58,122 nucleotides of DNA, taken from NCBI GenBank assembly GCA_009103225.1, contig RHPI01003020.1:240724-298845 (forward strand), given 5' to 3'. Positions 38,817 through 52,650 of this stretch are shown piece after piece (position 1 is the first letter of the stretch; each line of letters begins with the position of its first letter). The notes beneath the pieces are model-generated. The model was not told the origin of the DNA and searched no databases. It was given only the letters and a program-made list of their open reading frames with translations. The DNA comes from Chlorokybus atmophyticus (taxonomy: Eukaryota > Plantae > Mesostigma and Chlorokybus algae). The position numbers were made by a program, and so were the translations under genes.

Positions 38817-39605
38817 GATGCTGTCGACATAAGCATGTGCTGTCCATACAAAACCGTGCACTATGTGAAAGCAGCTATAGGAACCAAGCACTATGCAGGC
38901 CAAAGCACTGGCCTTGGCATGTTCAATTTGCTAATGCAGTGAGTTCTGCACCTTGCATAGCATGCATTACGGAGGGGTCTTGCTGTCTATATGAACTGTG
39001 AAATTGCAATGGCAACAGTCTAATGGCCTACCAAGCATTCAACAAGTCCTGACTGCAAAGACCTCATGGGTTCTACAAGATTGGCCTTGATGGCAAGAGT
39101 AACAGTTCTCAAAAGGCAAGAAAAGAGAAACTAACGGAGAAGATCATCCATCACATCCAGAACCAAAATCGCATGACTGCCTACAACAAGCCTGTAGAGA
39201 GGTGCGACAGCTTGCTGCCGCCTGCTGTGTTGTGAGATAGCTTGTTGCCTGCAGTCGGTAGTCATGCGAGTTTAGTTCTAGATTGGATGGATAACCTTGT
39301 TCGTCAATTTCTCTTTCTTGGCCTTGGAGCTACTGTCACTCTTGCCACAAAAGCCTTGTCTTGTGAAACCTGCGGGGTCTTTACAGCAAGGACTTGTTGA
39401 ATGCTTGATAGCCTGTCAGACTTTTGCCACTGCAATTGCACAGTTAACACAATCGGCAATCTCACCGACTATGTTAACCCCTCGGTGACGTATGCTATGC
39501 AAGGTGCAGAACTCACTGGCTTTGGCATGTTGCTTGGTTCCTCCAGCTGCTTGCACATGGTTAACGGTTCTGCTGGACAACACATACTTATGAGGACAGC
39601 ATCAT
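38817..39605. repeat. Long imperfect palindrome (~370-bp arms, ~50-bp spacer)
   Basis: About 38817-39190 aligns by eye to the reverse complement of about 39241-39605. Shared blocks include ggaaccaagc, cagtgagttctgcaccttgcatagcat, caagcattcaacaagtcc, aaagagaaa and cgcatgact. Confidence 0.85.
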
Positions 39606-40030
39606 GTGATGACATCGAGATGTACTACTACATGGTGAACGGTTCTGCGTGGACAACGCATGCTTATGGGGAGCATCATTGTGATGACATTGAGATGTAC
39701 TACTGCAGCTGCTTGCACATGGTAAACGGTTCTACATGGACAGCACATGCTTACGCACATGTGGTTCTGCCTGCCTGCCTACCTTCTAGCAGAGCCTGTA
39801 GTGCTTGCATGCAGAAGAGAGTACCGTTGCTAGGCGGTTGTTGCAAGCACGCCAGCAACCGGAGCAAACATGTGCATGCACGCGCTCACCGTGCATGCGT
39901 GCAAGCATGCAACTGTAACTGCACTTTGTGAGTGAAAACAGAGCACAGGTGCATGCATGCAAGCACTGTACCCTCTGCTAGAAGGCAGGCAAACAGGCAG
40001 GCAGAACCATATGCATGACACATGTGCGTA
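39546..40030. repeat. Approx. 2.5 tandem copies of a ~75-85 bp unit followed by a second inverted repeat
   Basis: The unit acatggt.aacggttct...gatgacat.gagatgtactact recurs in 39546-39760. About 39750-39822 is the inverted copy of about 39955-40030 (gttctgcctgcctg...ccttctagcagag...agtgcttgcatgca). Confidence 0.8.
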
Positions 40031-41109
40031 TGTTCTGACGTCAAACGCCTCGCTTTTTACCTGCCGGTGGTGGTGGTGGTGGTGGTGGGTGTGGGGTGGG
40101 TGATGTGTGCGGGTTGGGGGTGGGGGTGGGGGCTTACCTTCACCTGTCGCAGACGCCATGATCTTCAGGAGGATCCCAGCCAGGCGACCACCTTCGCCGC
40201 CGGCAATGCCGTCAATGCCAAGACGCCGGCACGGTACGGCACGGCCAGGATGCGTGCCACCCGCCAGCAGCAACGGTAAGAAGGACACCACCGCCGCCGC
40301 CGCCGACAATGACGACTGCCCTCAAACACGACAACAGTGTGGAACGATTTATCCAACTTGCAAGCACAGATACCGGTGACATCATCCAAACAGGCGCAGC
40401 GTCATAGATGCATGCACGACTTCAGGATGACATTGAAGTGCTGGAGGAGGCGGGGCTGGCACCCACATCAGACTTGCATGTAGGCAGCACAGCTTTGCCT
40501 GCAGTACGCCCTCGCCAAGGACACCCAGCCGGGGGCAAGGTCCCGCATGGAGGCTCTCGCTGCATCCCCTGCCTAGGCTGGACGTCAGGGCTGGGATATG
40601 TTACTACAACCAAACAATGCTGTTGCGTGATGGTAGTTATTGTTAGTATATACATCAACCTCACACGCAACATCTATGCTTGTTTGCACAATGCTGCATC
40701 CAAACAAGCAGTTAGTCCTGGTTGTTAAGGGGTGTTGTTCCTAACTTTGTTCAAGACGTTGTGATGACTCGTTGATGAGTCAATGATGACGCTTGCACAA
40801 AAAAAGTACCAAGTCATGATAACATCTCTGAAAAAAACGACTTGGTCATTGCTTCAGGACGCAACAAGTCACTGAGCTCACTTGGAAGACAGCAGAACAG
40901 CTGCAGGAAAGCTTGATGATCATGATCTCCAGACCACACGCAACAACCTGGCCTGCCTAAGTCCATGGAAATTGCTATGCTTGAACATAGCTACCCTCTC
41001 ACCTCTCACAACATCTCTGTACATGTGCTACGCAGCCAACCAAATAACCTATGTACACTATGTACTTGAAGGCATGTACACTCGCGTGCAGACAATTCAC
41101 ACCCAATTG

Positions 41110-42452
41110 CTACTGCTGCTGCTCCTGCTGCTGTGAGGGTGGCGGTATGCGCGACGGCCCTCTGTTGGCGGTCTTTTTTGGCAGCAAGAATGCGTGCACA
41201 TGCGGCAGCATGCCTCCCTCAGGCATTATGGCGTCGTTGAACAGCTGCGAAAGCTCCTCGTCATTGCTCACCTGAAAGTGTAAGAAAGCACTTGTGAGTG
41301 CCAGTCAGAGTTTCATCTGCTCCTTTCTGATTGTTAGCTGGCTTCGCTCAGCGTGCATATGCTGCTGGCCTGGAAGCAACAGACAAGCCACCTAGTAGAC
41401 ATTTGTGTTAACATGCATGCACACAGCGAAGTGTTGCAGCAGTTGAAACACTAACCGCCCAGCCAAGCTTGACGCTTGACAGAGCCTTTGTCAACCTGAG
41501 GTGTCATGTTGTGTTCAACAAGCGCCTTGGCTGACCCAACTTGCACGCATGCGCATGTGTGTTGGGGTATGACGTTGCACTGACTGTAATTGGTTCTGCT
41601 CAGAACTCGGTTCAGCTGAGCTTCGCTTGAAAGTTGCGTCAATAACTGTCGGACATTTGTGATCGAGTGAGCAACTCAGCCTTAGAAACACGATGTGCAT
41701 CATACGGCCTGCGGTCCAGTTGAGGTTACTCACGGCGAGTAGGATGTGGCGTGGTTGGATAATGTTCTTGCCATGCTGCTTAGCAGCATCTCCAGCAAGG
41801 TCCAGCACCTCAGCCGCGAGGTACTCCAGCACGGCCGCCAGGAAGACTGGCGCACCAGACCCCAGCCGGTCCACCTTCGGGACCAGCGGCGGCGGATCGA
41901 CGGGCTCCTTCAGGTACCGGGCGATCCTCCCGACTGCGCACATGTGTGTGCGTGCGTGGGTGCATGTGTGCATCCACATGATGCATGCATATGTGCACTG
42001 TGGGTACGCCTATAGGTGCGGGTAGATACCTGACTGCGTGAGGGCATACATGTGTGCATGCATGCGTAGGAGCATGTTTGTTGTGTCAGAGCATGCGTGT
42101 GTGCAGAATGAATACAGACACTGAGACTCAGCTTGATCTGAACGCAAGTAGTGTGGCATGAGAGCCTCCTGCACCTGGAAAGATGAGTCCAGCTTTCTGC
42201 TGTCTGCGCACAGGTCTGCGCCTGCGTCTGCCACCGGACCTGCCTTCGTCAGGGAGTTGCATCTGCAGATCTTCTGGTGAGGGCTGATACTCTGTATCCT
42301 CCTGATCCTCCATATCCTCGGGGCTCTCGTCCTTGTTCGCCTGCTGGTCCTTCTGCTTGTCGTCAGTTTCATCAGCTAAACGTGACCGTTTTCCCGGTGG
42401 CGGATAATCCTGCAATCGTTGTGTGATTTGCATATGCACGCACACACGCACG

Positions 42453-42502
<50 letters not shown>

Positions 42503-42628
42503 CTGTGCTGTCCCTGCTTCCATTTCTTTGGTGTTGGTTGTTGTGGTTGTTGTGGTTCTCCTGTACGTTGTCGTATCTCCCTCTGTCTCTGGCCCCGCAG
42601 GTGCCGTGTGCTCCGCCTCGTCCTCCAT
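41110..42628 (-). CDS. Highly divergent histone H2A variant (240 aa, 4 exons)
   Basis: Exons 42628-42503, 42409-42175, 41933-41734 and 41271-41110 are all GT-AG and phase-compatible (723 nt). Core: [10 protein letters not shown]|[67 protein letters not shown]|[33 protein letters not shown]. Confidence 0.92.
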
Positions 42629-43774
42629 TGTGAGCTCGTCCTTCTCAGACGCTATGTTCTTGTTTTAACCCTTTGTGAGACTTCAGCCAAATGGCACAAG
42701 TGTTGCTGTTGCTGCTTGCGTTTAGCTAAGTTAACAAGACATGCAGTCTTTGTACATGAAGATGACCTGCGCTCTGGAAGTTTGGGTTGCACCCATTCGG
42801 TCTTCTGGTGTGCATGCACGAAGACTCTGGCCGCCAGCACTAAAGCTACGTGTGTTTCTGAAGCCATGCATGGGCTTACAAAACAACCGAAAGGACAGCT
42901 GAGCTTAACACCGTGTTGCCAAGAAACCCCCCCGAGCTGAGTCGTGCGTTGCAAGGCAAAAACTCTGGTTCAGTCTTACAACAACAACGACACTACCGAC
43001 CGGTAGATGTTATTGTTGCCATGACAACCGTTGCATAAGCGGTGCTCTCAAATGAAGCGAAAACTTAGACTGCACGCAAGGCCAGTAGTGCATGTTGGCA
43101 TGCATTGGCCTTGAGCTGCATGCAAGTTGTTGACAACTTCCCATGCATGCATGGCATGCATGGGCACCGCCACTGAGACTCACTTGCACAGCAGCATGCA
43201 AGGCCCTTTGCAAGACCAACCAACCCCAGCTACCTGCGTTTGACAGAGACCCTCTCTCCTCGAGTAGATATTCACCCCTTTAGCTTCCAGATTTTCTTCT
43301 CCTGGGCCAAGTCATTCCATCCTTTCTCTCATGCGCTCCCCCCTCCCTCTCCTCCTCCTCCTCCGCCGCCGCCCATAGGCCATATGAAAGACACAAGAGG
43401 GCCTCTGTGTTCTATGAATTCCATTGGCCCTGCCATGCATGCTCCACAGGTATATGTAGCCAGTTACTTTGATTAAAATGCTTGTGAAATGAGGTACGCA
43501 AGGAAGCAAGCAGGCTGGCTTCTTTCATTACTATCAGAACCTCAGCACGCTGAGGCTGTAAAGATCAAGTGCCAGTGAGTTGAGTATCCTCTTTCAGAGT
43601 AGTTCGTTGCTTTGAGTCGCATTCACACTTTCGTGCTGCATGGTGAGCTACGCTGTGCTGTCTGAGGGTAGACCATAGGGGCAAGGGGGCCGCCCGCTTG
43701 CCATTCTTGCAAGCAAAGCAAGCATAACAAAAGGACAGCGCAGCCGCTTGGACAGGCCAGCAGCTGCTCATATA

Positions 43775-44544
<770 letters not shown>

Positions 44545-46888
44545 GTTTTTGAAGCGCCCGTCGTTGGGCTCAGTCGCGTACATGGTGTTGTCATTGTCAC
44601 TACTCCTGCTGCTGTTGTTGGTGTTGGCACTATGTTGGTGTTGATGCTGCCGCTGATGGTTGTGGACTTGTACGTGCGTGCGTGCGTGCGTGCGTGCGTT
44701 GCTTGTGATACTGGTACTGTTCCATATCAAGTTGCTGCTGCTGCTGCTGTTGCCTGAGAGGTGCCACTGTTGCTGATGACAGGTCGTGCGGGCATTGCTA
44801 CTGATAGCAACAGTGCAACTGACTTGGGCTGCTGGATCATCAGAGACCGAGAGAGAACCCATTCGACTTCAGCTAGCTGCAACGCTCTCGGTTGGTACGG
44901 CATTATGCATCGGTGTATGTGATTTGCAATCTGTGTGAACAGCTTTCATAGTCAACCATGTAAGCTGTTGCAGAAGACTGTCAGCCCAGATCACAAGCGC
45001 GTTCGGCGTTCTCATGGCGAAGTCTTTCACTAATGCGGTCGCTGTGGCACGCACTGAAAGGAGACCTGCCAGGCCCTCCATTAATACGGTATTGGAATTG
45101 TCTCAGCAGGTCTGAGCAAATGTAATATGTCAGGTGGCTTGCCATCAAGTATGCTTGTGCAGTGATAGGCAGGGTTGACAGTACGTAGCTTGGTGTGACG
45201 CTGTCGCTGTTAGTGTATGAGAGATTTTGGGTGGCTTGCCATCAAGTATGCGTCATCCTCAAAGGTACCATGCCGGCAAAGCAACTGACTGCTTGCAGCA
45301 CATGTGACATGTGCATACGGGCGCAACCTGCCTAACAAACATGCGAGCATTATGTAGTCTTCAGGTTGCCTGCTGCTTTCTACTGCCTGCCTTGCCACGC
45401 ATTGCATATAGAAGCACATAGCATAGCATTCGTAGAGGCTTTGGTTGTAAGCAATTGTTTTTGCCTGCCTTGTCTGCTATTGCTGCTTGTATTACACAGC
45501 TTCCGTGTGAGATGCATGTTGTGGCTATGGCTTGTACCCTGTTTTACCACGGCTGCAACCAAAGCATGCGGCCACAGTTTCCTTGTGTATAACTCCGTAT
45601 AGACAAGCAGGGCAAGCATTGTCGTTGTCGTTGTCACGTGGCCTGCCCCTCTAGCATTTGATGCAACATGCCCCTAGCCCCCTAGCTTAGCCCTTTGAAA
45701 GTTGATGAAATTTGGGTTTCTGTTTGTGCGGCTTTGCTCGTCCTGTGGCGTGCTTATGTACGTCTGCCCCCTGCCTGCGCTGCCTTGTTTCTACCCGAGG
45801 GTTCCAAAAACCTGAAACCTAAATGTTGAGTGTCCTAGTCTTGTCTGTTGAGCATTGTATGAGCTTTCCAAATGATTCAAGTCGCACTCACACACAACTA
45901 GCACAACACAGACAAGCAGCCAGGACACCAGCACGCGCAATCAAATCAACGCAGGGGCGTAGCTGATGCAGTGCACTAGCCAAGTGCGTGCAAGGATTGG
46001 GGGTGAGAGCGGGGGGGCAAGGCAAAGCAGGCAAGGCAGCAGTGCACCATCTGTGGTCACGCAGATACAGGCATTAGGCCGGTGGCTTCAGGCAGGCAGG
46101 AGGACGACAGCAGCAAGACAGCAGCAGGGCGGAGGCGGAGGGAGTCGGGGTGTGGTTGTGCTGTGAGGTGCAGACGCCACCACAGCCGCCATAGCAGGGC
46201 TCGCATAATTGTAAGACCCATACTGAGACCCGTAGTGAGTGCCGATGGTGTTGCAGAACATCTGGTGGCTACCAGCATGCATATGTGGCCGAGACAGAGA
46301 AGATCTGTCTCGGCCACATATACAACGCTGCTTGTGCTTGTGCATACTTAGGCGCGTTGGTGATTTTCGCATGCTTGGACATACGCGCTGGACACTATAA
46401 ACACGTATGACCACTGTGGCCACTGTTGGCATGCCATACCCAACTACATGCTACATGCCATACCCAACTACATGCTTCCCACATGATCATCATATCGCAA
46501 TACACCCACATCACTGCATGTATCATCTGCTGCTGCGCCAGTTGGACATACAAACTGGAACTATCCTTGTGCAGCTCAAGTGAGCGTACAAACTGTCATG
46601 TGCTTGCACCCAATGCAGTTTGTGCTGCAGCATGTGTGGTACAGTATGTTGCATACATGCACACAAGCCAAACTTGAAGGACAACATGCAGGTATCTGTG
46701 TACCTGGTAGCTCTCCAAATACAATGGCCATCCGCATGCATCACTATGTAACCATGTTGTGCAGGTGAAGAAAATCCAACATTTGGCACATGTGGGTCGA
46801 GCTGCATGGCACAGTCGCACAGTCGATGTCTCACTCAACATTCTGACTGCGTATAACGGCTCTATTGCAGGGTCAGGAGATATAAGTC

Positions 46889-49800
46889 TCAAGACGCTCG
46901 CTGAGAACTGTTCTGCACAGACTGAGTTGACCATGAAGCACCGCGTGCTGGTGCACCTCTGAGAAAGTTGCTGTCAGACGCAATATTCTCCAGCAACACG
47001 TCATCGATGCCAATGCGCTCCTTCACCTGTAGATGCCACCACATTAACATCACGCAGATGGCGAACGCGTGTGACCTTGCTGACTACAACAGAGTCTGCA
47101 TATACCTCAAGCAGCTTGGACTCCAATGCTTCCACTGTGCGTCGTGCATCTTCGACCTGCCGCTCCAGGCACTTGACGTGCGAAGATGACGAACCGCCGT
47201 TGCCATAGGACAACAAGCTTGAGGACATGTCTGGCAGCACGGATGATGAACCCAACCATGGTAGCTGACTCCGCATGCTGTCTAGCAACGACGACATGCC
47301 TGCTCCGGTCTTCTCAGACCAGCCGCACAGCAGATCCGTGACCACACTGTTGCTTACGGCACCAGAGGAGCCATAAGCTACTGCCGCTGCTGCCACAGAT
47401 CGCAGAGCAGCCACAGCTTCAGTCACATCTGCAGTGTTTGCAGCTGCCATAGCTGCAGCTACTGCTGACCTGTTCAGGCAGGTGTCAATATGAGCAATCT
47501 GGACAACTGACGGACTTGTACAACTACAGTAATCGAAATAGTCTACTTGAGTTACCTGATGTCTTCTTGGGTCGCAGCTGCTGTAGTGCTGTTTGAACGC
47601 GACCGTTTCTGCTTGTTGTCTGTCTCGCGTCGAAGATTTCCATTGGCAGTGGGTGCATCGAGAGTTTTGGCAATGTTGCTGTTCACCACGCCACCAGGCT
47701 GAGAAGACTGCTCAGCAAATTGCAGGGTTGCGCTGGCAGGAGCTTTCATTGAAGATGATGATACTGCCTTGTCAACTACTCGGCTGGCTGGGCCATTGCT
47801 GTGCACAGCTTTGGTATTAGCGGAGCTGTTTGCAACAGCAGCTGCTGCCTGCTGCTGCAACAAAATGGCAGCGTCTCCTGGTAGTGCCAACTTCACACCA
47901 GTCGTGAAGTCCTCGTCGCGACCCAAAGAACCGCCAGATGACTTGCTAAGTTTCTTGGATCGTAGTCTCTCGGCATCCTTCTCCTTATCCTTTTCCTTAT
48001 CACGCCGATGCTTTTCAGCCTCTTCATCACGACGTTTCCGCTCAGCTGCAGCGGCCTTTTCAACCTTCTCCCGCTCACGTCGCAGCTTCTTTTCGCGCTT
48101 GCGGATCACCTTCTACACACCACATGCGCCTACTGTCAGCATACATGACCAGCATCACTGAACTCAAAACGCATGGTTCGGCTGCATACCTTCTGGTCTG
48201 CTGTGAGCTCACCACCCGCCAGGTGATCATCATCATCAGGTACGGATGTGGCGTCCAGAGCTTCTTGCTCATCATTCTGCGATGTGTCATCGCCATTTGC
48301 CAGACTGCCATCTGTCTCGGGACTACCAGGTGACACCGTAGACGCTCCTGAGCTCAGCTGGTAAGGATGTTCAGCACTGTGGACACGCTCAAGGGCGCCA
48401 TTGCGCCAACCTTCAGGAGGCATGTCTGTACTGGAAGTTGACATGCCTGGTCCAGGCTGCATACCCATCCAAGGGTTGCCGCGCGTCAAAGATGGGCCAC
48501 TGGTCAGGCTGGGGTTAGGCCAAGTGGCCGCGGTGTGTGGGTGCTGATTGTGGATGCTGTGGCTCTGCCCTGGAACTGCGGTCTGTCCATTGCTGGCAGC
48601 TAGGAACTGAGCAAAACCTCCAGCTGCTACGGCCTGGCCAAAAGGTCCACTGCCAAGCTGTGGGTAACTTGTGCTGGCAGGTGCAGCACCGTTACCAGCA
48701 TTGCTTGACGAGGGCGCAGTGCTACCCATGACAAATCCTCCGACCAACCCAGCAAACGCATGATTCCCATGATTCTGACTTGGACCTGGACCGAAAAGCG
48801 ATGGTTGAAAACCTGGAGGGGGTGTGCGTCGTGCTGTTGTTGGTTGTAATTGCTGTTGTTGCAGAGGCTGTGGGTGTGCTTGATGTGAAGGCTGTGGTTG
48901 CAGGGCAGATATGGAGGTGCCAGGTGCAGGGTAAGTCTGCGGCCCTGCTAACCAATTCAGTTGATTGACTGCCTGCGTGCCATGAGGAGTAGCTGCTAGA
49001 TTCCCAGGGTCATATGCCTTTCCCGCACCCATGATGGCAGGATCCACAAAACTGTTGCTACCAAAAAGCCCTGATGCTGGGCGTATGCCAAAATCCAACT
49101 GCCGTGCAGCAGCTGGCCCTGCGGGTTGTTTCACTCCTAATGCTGAGAACAATGCTGACATGTCCACGCTTGCACTGCCATTGCCCTGGACATTTGGTGT
49201 TGCAAACCCAGGGGGTCCAGTAGACACCGGTCTTGCGGGTGCAAACCCAGGAGGAGCTGGCTTCGCAAACCCTGGAGGGACTGCACAACAGGCAGTGAGG
49301 AAGATGCAACCCAAGCAAACTACTGCTTCCTAACAAGCAACCAGGCAGCTGAGCCCTGCACACCTTGACTTATGTGCATACAACATCAGGTACTTCTGCA
49401 ATTGCAAAAACTCACCCGAAAGTCTTGTTGCCGCCGAGCGCTCCAATTCGGACACTGTCATTGGTGGTGCTGTAGGCTTCAGTATAGGAGATATTGGGGC
49501 AGAATGCTGGGTTGAGCTTTGCTCAAAAGTGATGCTCACATTCGGCAGCATGGCACGAAGGGACTGATGCCAACTTTCTAAGCTCGCAGCGGGTTGTAGG
49601 GCTGGTTCAATTGAGGGTGTGCGCGAGGATGCTGATGTGCTCTGACCAGCCCTGCTTGGCCTGCCATCCACACCTGGTGTTTCCTCAGCATCCCCACGTG
49701 CAAATGTAAATCGTGACTGCCTTGCAGGTTTTGCTGCTAACGACAGATTGGCAGCAAGCCGGCCTGCCTCAGCGGAGCGGATGCCAGCAAGGGCAGTAGC

Positions 49801-52650
49801 ATGTGGCAAGGTAGAGCCCTCAGCCCACGGATCAAAGTCCAGGTCAAGGATGTCCTTAAACAGGTCTTGTGCATCCTGTTCTTGATCGATGTCATCGGCT
49901 GGTTCCACAGGCACTGTGTTCATGTACCCCCCAAGACGCGACTGTGCTTCTGTAAAAGGCGAACCTTCAGGATTACTCAATGGATGAAAGTCTCTTAATG
50001 CATCAGGCACTGCTGCCAAGGCTGGTGATAGGGGTGGTGGAGGTGGTAGGGGAGAGCTCGCAGGTCCTGACCAAGCAATCTGGCGATCGGACTCTTCTTC
50101 CAACCCGATTGTCTGTGCAATCTCGCGATCTTCCCAGCTATCGACCTCCTCCTCCTCAAGAAGTTGCACCTTGCTGCTGGTGCGGACAGGCCGCTGTGGT
50201 GATGCCGGTTCTGCTGTACTTGTCTGAACTTCAAGCTGACTTGGTTCAGGTGCAGAACTAGCCTCTGCAGGGGTGGCAGAGGCAGGCTCAATCTCCGCAG
50301 AAACATCTAAGCGCGCTGTCTGGGAAGGTACCCGCTGTATGCTTGCATGTGATGCTGCGACCTTGCCTGGAGGCTCAGCAGCCACGGCAGCAAATAGTGG
50401 TCTGCCGGATGAGCTTGCAGCAGGCTGTGTAGATCGTGTTGGTGGTGTGCTGGGTGTATTGGAAAGCAGAGAAATGGAGGCAGGGCGAGGACCTGTGGTG
50501 CCTGATGAAAGCGGAATGCGAGTTGTCATAACAGGTGCAGGCGGTCGAGCAGCATGAGGACCCCACACAGGCTGCGTGATTGGTGGGTTGGCAGGTCCCG
50601 GAGGTGCCGGTGGTGATACTCGCTTTCCTCGGCCTGCTGCCGCAGGAGGCGGTGCTGCTGCAGCTGCCTTCGCAGCGAGCGACGCTTTTGCTCCCCAGGA
50701 CGACGTTGGTGGTAAGCTAATCGGTGGTACAGCAGACGGTGTCAAGGCCGCAGTGTCAGCTTGCTGAGGTGGACCTTCAGATCGCCCTCCTCGTGATGTT
50801 GAGTGCGTGGCCTCATGAAAATTTTGATGTTTGCTGCCAAATCGTGCCAACATTTCCTCCTTAGTGAAGCTGTCTTCTTCCACGCCAACGTCATGCAGGT
50901 ACAAGCAATCCGGATTGTTACAAGGCACATGCCGCAAAAAAGCATTGCAGTACTTTGTCGTGCCAAAACAAGCCCTGCAGCAATGCGTATTCAGAAAATC
51001 GGTCACACGCATCCACGGCCAACCTGACACAGTATCAAACCCAACGTGATGCACACAACTTACCGGACAAGTCTGCCTTGGTGTATAGTGCCATCTATGG
51101 CTGCTATGCACGCCATTGCATCTTCTTCCCGTGCAAAGGTGACATAAGCACTGCCACCGGGAGCAGAAGCAGCAAAGGGGAAATTATTTCCCCGGTTAAC
51201 TGCTATCTTCAAAATCTTCCCAAATTGGCCAAAGTGCTCATGCCTTCTCAACACCTGACAGCATGAGCATTGGACACAATTACAGATTGGACGCATTCCT
51301 CTGTTGCACTTCCAGTGTATATATATGCCAACAGCATGGAAGACTCAATACACGCAGACAGTATGCTGCAACCGTGTGACATTGTGAACTAAGCATGCAA
51401 GACAGTGTTACCTCTTCCAAACAATCTGATGGCGCCAACCCGACAACATAAACCAGGTTCCGTTGTATGACACGCATGTTGCTCAAATGTTTTCGCGAGG
51501 CAGAGACTTCCGATCGCTCTTGCTTCTCTTTTTGCTTCTTATCGTTGATGATCTTTTGCAACCTGCTCAACGCAGAACCAATGTTGAATCTCAGGACATG
51601 GCGATACCACAGCAACTAGACACATGGCAAGATACTTACTGCTGCGGATCTGGAGCACTTGTGTTTATGTTGTCCAAGTCATAAGGCGTGCGGCAAGCTG
51701 GGCAGCGAGCGGTTGTGTAGTCTTTGTTCGCAATCTCAACAATTTGATGCCAGCACCACAGACAAATCTACAACACAAACACAGCAAGTACAGGTTGAAT
51801 AGAGAGCACCTGCACTGTAATGCTGCGCTGCTGAACTCACCAAGTCCCGCAATTTACACAGCAATAACGTTTTGTACTCATCTTTTTATGTACTCGTCGA
51901 CCAGTACCGCACATGTACTGTTCAATTGCACTGCTTGCGGGCTACATAGTTGCTAACGGCATTTCTAATTGCATTCAAGGGTGTTCCGACAACCACTCAT
52001 ACAGGGAGCTAGTATGCTGCATGCATGCACAGAAGCTCCCGGTATGAGGCCCAATTTCCGTCTGTACCAGGCCAAGTCAGCTTCAATTGCGCCAGTACAG
52101 GTTGCAAGGGTCCACGATAACACGGCACAACTGGTTGTACGTACTGCTTGAACAAGTTGGACACGGACCCTGGGCCCAATGCAGCAAGCTGCATGACTTG
52201 TGCACAAAACCTGTGGGGCAGCGCTGGAATGCTGGTGAAGCAGCTAGCACGCAATGAGTTTGCTGACCAGCTTGCAACGACCAAGTGGCTTAAATTAGCT
52301 TCTACCAAGGCCCAGCCGTTGCCGTAGAGGCTTCACTGCTGAGATTGGCGACCACACATCAAGCAATGCTGGATCGGCCTTGTTTTGTCAGATAAGCAAG
52401 ACTTCATTGTACAAGAGAAACGCTGCTGTTCAAACGGCAGGCTTCCTTCAATCGCAGAGTTGTCGCTCTTCTTGATGTGCGGAGCAATGACCATCAATAT
52501 ATGGTCATTGCTATGACCATCCACAGCGTCAGCACAGCTGCTTCTCGTGCTCACCTGATAGCCGCATTTGCAAGGCAGAAAATGCTTGTCCGTAAGGTCA
52601 AGATCCTCAAGGCAGAGAGGGCACTGCTCCTGCTCGTCCGCGTAGTCCAT
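46889..52650 (-). CDS. NOT4: NOT4/CNOT4 RING-RRM-C3H1 E3 ubiquitin ligase of CCR4-NOT, with long C-terminal extension
   Basis: CPLCLEDLDLTDKHFLPCKCGYQ|ICLWCWH..RCPACRTPY, RKHLSNMRVIQRNLVYVVGL, FGQFGKILKI, SAYVTF, ACFGTTKYC..FLR..PCNNPDCLYLH, DILDLDFDPW, RQSRFTFAR and PPGF repeats. TGA at 46889-46891. Confidence 0.95.

Follow-up and report, generated by a model that had tools for sequence, protein, structure and literature searches.

The present work concerns a putative histone H2A gene lying on the minus strand of a 58,122-nt stretch of Chlorokybus atmophyticus DNA (contig RHPI01003020.1 of assembly GCA_009103225.1, positions 240,724 to 298,845 of the forward strand), hereafter called the window, to which all coordinates below refer. 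An earlier note, made from the letters of the DNA alone, had pointed to positions 41110-42628 as a candidate new H2A variant encoded in four exons. Splicing these exons does give an open coding sequence (CDS) of 723 nt, that is, 240 amino acids (aa) followed by a TAG; all three introns are of the GT..AG type (93, 241 and 462 nt), there is no frameshift, and the motifs listed at the time (the Thr run, PGKRSR, the 17-aa segment of loop L1, KQHGKNII in loop L2 and the docking stretch up to LLPKK) are found where they had been placed. One detail had to be amended, as the C-terminal end is indeed rich in Gln but reads SQQQEQQQ, with three final Gln and not four. In the direction of its transcription, the gene is laid out as follows:

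42503..42628, minus strand: putative exon 1, aa 1-42 of the 240-aa model, with the ATG at 42628-42626 and the Thr run
42410..42502, minus strand: intron 1, 93 nt, GT..AG, consisting largely of a (CT)n microsatellite and readable in frame with no stop codon
42175..42409, minus strand: exon 2, with the acidic N-tail, Met75 (42313-42311), the Arg cluster (42188-42235) and the alphaN motif KAGLIFP
41934..42174, minus strand: intron 2, 241 nt, GT..AG, phase 1, separating FP from VGR
41734..41933, minus strand: exon 3, with alpha1, L1, alpha2, L2 and the start of alpha3, and with the Pfam Histone and PDB H2A matches
41881..41901, minus strand: seven-codon L1 insertion VDPPPLV, within the 17-aa L1 segment (41857-41907)
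41758..41781, minus strand: divergent L2 KQHGKNII, in which the D, N, K and R of the near-invariant RDNKKTRI are changed
41272..41733, minus strand: intron 3, 462 nt, GT..AG, phase 0, separating LLA from VSNDEEL
41110..41271, minus strand: exon 4, with the end of alpha3, alphaC, the docking domain, LLPKK, a Pro/Gln-rich C-tail and the TAG (41110-41112)

A word search with the exon-3 region retrieved a public protein of 166 aa, jgi/Chlat1/4608 (eukprot; Chrsp290S00320), hereafter P0001, which is 100% identical to residues 75-240 of the four-exon model. Splicing at intron 2 yields its sequence exactly, and it starts at the internal Met at 42313-42311, leaving out the whole of exon 1 along with 32 codons at the start of exon 2. 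Our database and fold tests were run on P0001 or on single exons. Residues 1-74, with exon 1, the Thr run and PGKRSR among them, are unsupported, since the public model begins at Met75. The start of exon 1 has a good context (ACAATGG), with an in-frame TAA 13 codons upstream of the ATG; the exon itself has a weak donor (GTTCTC), a low-complexity sequence and a GC content at third codon positions (GC3) of 0.57, against 0.75-0.76 in the exons encoding the fold. The open reading frame (ORF) 42128-42628 continues straight across intron 1, and products of 240, 271 (intron 1 kept) or 166 aa are possible; the true N-terminus may be either Met1 (42628) or Met75 (42313). As for the acidic N-tail of about 113 aa proposed earlier, it is possible but unsupported, the only public model lacking exon 1. 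A tail of 39 aa, comprising an acidic stretch and the Arg cluster, is the safe minimum.

The H2A fold announced by the earlier note was borne out by both Pfam families, each above its cutoff in P0001: Histone (PF00125) with 31.1 bits (gathering cutoff 26.4) and Histone_H2A_C (PF16211) with 40.7 bits (cutoff 20) over residues 118-149 and profile positions 1-32 of 35, the score being 43.8 bits with exon 4 alone. The top PDB sequence matches are H2A chains (E about 1e-35; 1e-33 to 1e-35 for the plant chains), and these alignments run end to end apart from a seven-residue gap facing VDPPPLV in L1. We also built a single-chain AlphaFold2 model of P0001 from a 103-sequence alignment, with a mean predicted local distance difference test (pLDDT) of 73.9. 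The predicted elements are alphaN (residues 37-41), alpha1 (47-55), L1 as a coil (56-72), alpha2 (73-99), alpha3 (107-116) and alphaC (118-123); means over ten-residue blocks reach 90-98 for residues 71-120, and the region of the L1 insertion, modelled as coil, has block means of 79 (residues 51-60) and 66 (residues 61-70). Foldseek matched this model to nucleosomal H2A chains only, with target-normalised template modelling (TM) scores of 0.75-0.85. Judged by its Pfam matches and its predicted fold, the product of the locus is a true member of the H2A-fold family.

The fold core, the acidic patch, the docking domain and the lysines of LLPKK are all retained, the last of these being the ubiquitination site already recognised in the note; the acidic patch (E, E, D, DEE) is also there, with the correction that at one position E has become D (LDLAG). 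The DNA-contact arginines of alpha1 (GRIAR) and of L1 (the R of DRLG) are kept too, and P0001 keeps the features needed for pairing with H2B and docking on H3-H4.

Against this conserved background, L1 stands out. From the LK of alpha1 to GAPVY, P0001 has 17 residues, and every other pattern-matching H2A (268 fetched) has exactly 10, so that the L1 spacing noticed earlier is indeed unique among the H2As we fetched. VDPPPLV contains the sole fold positions of P0001 without an aligned column among 102 H2As. Extra L1 sequence was found in only two other fetched H2As, P0091 and P0103, where it amounts to 50-90 residues and apparently corresponds to unspliced introns; these two algal-type gene models suggest that some H2A genes carry an intron within the L1 codons. 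As a possible origin for the seven extra residues, our comparison might point to imprecise intron loss or a splice-site shift at this L1 intron site. We also considered a hidden micro-intron, as a 27-nt GT..AG stretch exists inside the insertion, and rejected it because its removal leaves L1 two residues short and because 27 nt is far below the 93-462 nt of the introns of this gene.

Conservation was scored column by column against the same 102 diverse H2As. P0001 keeps 18 of the 19 invariant columns and matches the consensus at only 2 of the 11 most variable ones; by simple arithmetic, the probability of keeping at least 18 of 19 is about 1e-3 if an identity of about 60% is spread evenly over sites. 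Among the 64 columns conserved at 90% or more, 15 are changed (in the other H2As, the median is 0 and the maximum 11), namely, in P0001 numbering, Q44I, G57P, Y66K, Y77F, E91D, N95D, D99Q, N100H, K101G, R104I, T128I, I129M, V134M, N137H and I138V. Four of them (D99Q, N100H, K101G and R104I) make up the unusual KQHGKNII of L2 to which the note had drawn attention, all at columns conserved in at least 90% of sequences. R104I, by alignment to KKTRIIPRH, replaces the arginine of L2 that, in canonical nucleosomes, reaches into the minor groove of the DNA. The charge is just as unusual: with 11 K+R for 12 D+E, the fold of P0001 has an isoelectric point (pI) of 6.46, against 8.13-10.57 (median 10.13) in the 102 other H2As, and the pI of the whole protein comes to 6.4 for the 166-aa form and 5.0 for the 240-aa form, where none of the others falls below 9.47. 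The net-acidic fold and the change of the L2 Arg to Ile, neither of them singled out in the earlier note, are the strongest oddities of this protein.

We then looked at how isolated this sequence is. In a phmmer search against 1.84 billion representative proteins, P0001 itself (360 bits) was the sole match above the level of ordinary H2As, whose single-domain members score at most 130 bits and share 46-60% identity with it. The nine matches next in score were discarded as relatives, being tandem or duplicated H2A models with two matched stretches each, which score twice; none of the best 150 relatives is longer than 434 aa. A side observation from the representative library is P0246 (331 aa), in which an acidic N-tail precedes tandem H2A and H2B folds, in that order, and which could be a natural H2A-H2B fusion or the merged model of a gene pair. 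A word search of 5.8 billion proteins gave no match beyond ordinary H2As except P0001, and a metagenome scan with peptide patterns including the peculiarities of L1 and L2 returned only four ordinary H2As (40-55% identity). The L1 insertion was shared by no protein of Mesostigma or of another alga in the public data searched, and a contig lookup found the exact protein on record on no other contig. The description as lineage-specific and outside the described classes stands because no close relative appeared in these protein and metagenome searches.

In a maximum-likelihood tree, the end branch of P0001 measures 2.98 changes per column, 13 times the median of 0.23; it is the second-longest of the tree, and P0001 sits in no supported clade. 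Its pairing with P0248 was flagged as long-branch attraction and set aside. P0248 (137 aa) and P0243 (156 aa) are other long-branch H2As in which the docking stretch resembles IIPE(G/S)G, and P0248 is also without the L2 arginine (KKKIIKPRH); their resemblance to P0001 is probably either convergence or long-branch attraction. The best explanation of these results is a species- or genus-restricted, fast-evolved paralogue of the green-lineage H2A, encoded by a real and intact nuclear gene of Chlorokybus. Full-text literature searches returned no paper on this gene, on Chlorokybus H2A or on Chlorokybus histone variants, and a recent survey of algal H2A variants does not include streptophyte algae (PMC12459048).

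One has to ask whether such a gene still works. We lean, by a modest degree, towards a Chlorokybus-specific and functional H2A variant. A silent or decaying H2A duplicate, under relaxed constraint, with no stop codon yet and making no functional protein, would be expected to look similar in several respects: the branch is the longest but one, the near-invariant changes outnumber those of any of the 102 H2As, the losses of basic charge and of the L2 arginine resemble loss of function, no RNA supports expression of the duplicate, and the intact ORF has a probability of only about 0.23 under neutral drift. What speaks for function is where the changes fall, as they avoid the invariant core (18 of 19 columns kept) and concentrate in loops, tails and the docking surface; in addition, all six splice sites are canonical with no frameshift, GC3 in the fold exons is well above the overall GC content of the introns (0.50-0.53), and a clean in-frame insertion of 21 nt is atypical of decay. 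We consider the decaying duplicate rather unlikely, albeit the most serious of the rival explanations.

Several observations nevertheless weigh against a functional variant. In a neutral simulation, 23% of fold-length sequences brought to 60% identity were still without a stop codon, so the intactness of the ORF is weak evidence when taken alone. The searches gave no orthologue from which a ratio of nonsynonymous to synonymous substitution rates (dN/dS) could be computed. The sequencing runs that include the locus contain only low-coverage DNA contigs that run across the introns (e.g., 41512-41761), and gave no RNA support; the “RNA” runs with a share of 0.08 most likely match the (GA)n repeat alone and were not used. 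The N-terminal 74 residues depend on the weak donor GTTCTC and on low-complexity sequence, and the docking domain has a pLDDT of 52-60 in the monomer model, though this is usual for an H2A folded alone. Finally, a net-acidic histone that has lost its minor-groove arginine might bind DNA too poorly to be nucleosomal at all.

This last point leads to another explanation, that of an expressed protein with an H2A fold that does not wrap DNA, acting either as a soluble partner or decoy for H2B or as an adaptor through its acidic tail and patch. The acidic pI, which for the fold as for the whole protein lies beyond the values of the 102 compared H2As, would suit such a role, as would the loss of DNA-contact residues in L2 and the long acidic N-tail, which resembles the acidic stretches of histone chaperones. 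It is harder to see why such a protein would keep a docking domain (40.7 bits for Histone_H2A_C) and LLPKK, relevant only in a nucleosome, together with the DNA-contact arginines of alpha1 (GRIAR) and L1 (DRLG) and a cluster of five arginines (R5) in the DNA-proximal part of the tail. To our knowledge, there is no precedent for a soluble H2A-derived protein with all these retained features, and we hold this explanation to be improbable, more so than a decaying duplicate, though still in the running.

The setting of the gene bears on its regulation. It has a CNOT4-like gene on one side and non-histone sequence on the other, with no other histone ORF in the flanks examined. The Rfam histone 3' stem-loop (RF00032) gave no match at E up to 10 in positions 40300-43200, which include about 800 nt downstream, with the proviso that this criterion is a general one and may not hold for the canonical histone mRNAs of Chlorokybus. 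Because it has three introns, no histone 3' stem-loop and an isolated position, the gene probably encodes a replication-independent variant, as the note had supposed from the same sequence.

Upstream, four minus-strand ORFs of 593, 392, 185 and 149 aa occupy 47001-51111. The first has a C3H zinc-finger-like motif (...NPDCLYLHD...) recalling CNOT4/NOT4, with no Pfam match to the ORF pieces, and the 185-aa piece contains a highly charged, helix-like K/E/R stretch. Between them and the H2A gene, 1 kb upstream of the latter, lies a microsatellite of the (GA)n/(CT)n type, about 1.2 kb long (43600-44860), which contains N or an assembly gap and whose repeat type is also that of intron 1. We examined the possibility that the H2A exons are the last exons of this upstream gene and rejected it because the neighbour is CNOT4-like, because its ORFs are 4.4 kb away, beyond the 1.2-kb microsatellite, and because an in-frame TAA stands 13 codons before the ATG. 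On the other side, about 1.1-2.3 kb downstream of the H2A stop codon, nested inverted repeats (38830-40013; arms of 27-101 nt, 77-90% complementary) occur together with direct repeats spaced 75-87 nt, and could form a foldback element or one resembling a miniature inverted-repeat transposable element (MITE).

The inverted-repeat cluster 1-2 kb downstream (38830-40013) raises the question whether a transposon picked up the histone gene and now carries it. The H2A gene is not flanked by any pair of repeats, however, none of the 14 long ORFs of the window matches a transposase, helicase or reverse-transcriptase family, no second copy of the gene was found in the databases searched, and the same-strand upstream neighbour looks like an ordinary CNOT4-type gene; capture by a transposon seems to us very improbable.

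Coming back to a functional variant, the following mechanism can be proposed. The protein would enter nucleosomes as an H2A-H2B dimer. The lengthened, Pro-rich L1 would then alter or block the L1 contact between H2A and H2A', while the replacement of Arg by Ile and of Lys by Gly in L2, the acidic fold and the acidic N-tail would loosen DNA wrapping near the dimer. The R5 cluster, located before alphaN where the H2A N-tail passes the DNA, may partly compensate by gripping DNA, and can be likened to the Arg-rich tails of mammalian short H2As. The outcome would be labile, probably self-sorting nucleosomes, containing either two copies of this H2A (homotypic-only) or a single one. The acidic patch and LLPKK are kept, and therefore readers of the nucleosome surface and H2A ubiquitylation could still act. 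Such a scheme has parallels: in plants, how stable a nucleosome is depends on L1 and the docking domain, and most nucleosomes are homotypic for the H2A type (PMC6125630); in Giardia, a nucleosome with a six-residue insertion in alpha1/L1 of H2B wraps only about 125 bp, and its acidic patch has a different shape (PMC9396995). The ideas of self-chaperoning through the acidic tail, of a bar on homotypic nucleosomes and of a stage-specific role, all raised in the earlier note, are speculation.

H2A variants are told apart by L1, the docking domain and the tails, with consequences for nucleosome stability and sorting (PMC6125630). Here, seven extra residues in L1, the lost L2 arginine and the acidic fold together exceed anything seen among the approximately 250 H2As compared, the core, acidic patch and docking domain being kept. 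We tentatively suggest that this net-acidic H2A (pI about 5-6.4) is expressed and resides in chromatin, that its L1 prevents pairing with ordinary H2A and marks separate, loosely wrapped nucleosomes, and that it belongs to a burst of histone variants with extended N-termini confined to the genus, forming a new H2A class in the earliest-branching streptophyte lineage; taken as a whole, we regard this chain of claims as possible, though doubtful. An expressed and chromatin-bound protein would be a natural experiment on how much change the H2A-H2A' contact and histone charge tolerate, and would extend the short list of lineage-specific H2A variants to a streptophyte alga; a silent gene would simply be a decaying duplicate.

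It remains to place the protein among the known H2As. Membership tests agree with the note in that the signatures of H2A.X, H2A.W and H2A.Z are all absent. The terminal SQ[E/D][F/Y] of H2A.X is missing, as the SQ is followed by Q, stands 8 residues from the end and precedes no hydrophobic last residue; there is no SPK in the 20-aa C-tail, and hence no KSPK(K) of H2A.W. H2A.Z has a single-residue insertion in L1, the alpha2 signature LEYLTAEVLELAGNA, GDEELD and a docking domain shorter by one residue (PMC12459048). Our protein lacks LEYLTAEVLELAGNA, has seven additional residues in L1 rather than one and reads NDEEL instead of GDEELD, and no gap interrupts the alignment of its docking segment to canonical H2A. 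By the definitions of the same survey, the H2A.Z-type alpha2 signature of H2A.E and H2A.O is absent, as is the terminal SQ motif of H2A.O (PMC12459048). It differs from macroH2A in ending 20 aa past LLPKK, with no further Pfam domain, and from replication-dependent histone genes in its three introns, the lack of a 3' stem-loop match and the lack of a histone ORF in the flanks examined. On its sequence, then, it is an H2A family member that fails the defining tests of every variant class tested.

The best relatives are canonical or H2A.X-type H2As from green algae and land plants (e.g., Arabidopsis HTA13 and H2A.6; PDB 8j91 and 8kcb), with 55-60% identity over the fold, and share with P0001 the alpha2 motif, the NDEEL acidic patch, the docking domain and LLPKK. 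Compared with them, P0001 has seven more residues in L1, 15 near-invariant changes and an acidic pI; its N-tail, of 39 or 113 aa, is acidic with an Arg cluster, its Pro/Gln C-tail lacks SQEF, and the Chlorokybus gene has three introns and no 3' stem-loop. With H2A.Z, it has in common the nature of a probably replication-independent variant defined by L1 and the docking domain, with an L1 longer than the canonical one, but the H2A.Z outgroup of our tree did not attract P0001. Mammalian short H2As (H2A.B/L/P/Q) also have an Arg-rich stretch before the fold, a fast and lineage-restricted evolution and nucleosomes expected to be labile, although they are unrelated to P0001 by descent. They lack the acidic patch, and their docking domain and C-tail are cut short; P0001 keeps all three, together with LLPKK.

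Among algal variants, the H2A.N clade of brown algae is likewise lineage-specific and endowed with a long N-tail, and its genes lie outside the histone clusters (Rousselot et al. 2025, PMC12459048). H2A.N has a tail about 30 aa longer than usual, a QSLRA alphaN and canonical-like L1, alpha2 and acidic patch, and its authors did not find it in the green or red algal genomes they searched (PMC12459048). The Chlorokybus protein has the long N-tail, but its alphaN reads RRQQKAGL (QQKAG in place of QSLRA) and its fold is strongly diverged. The last comparison, with the H2B of Giardia lamblia, is a structural analogy only, since it involves another histone, from another lineage, which is the organism's only H2B; it nevertheless provides a case in which a six-residue alpha1/L1 insertion sits at the L1/L2 DNA-contact site and nucleosomes still form (PMC9396995).

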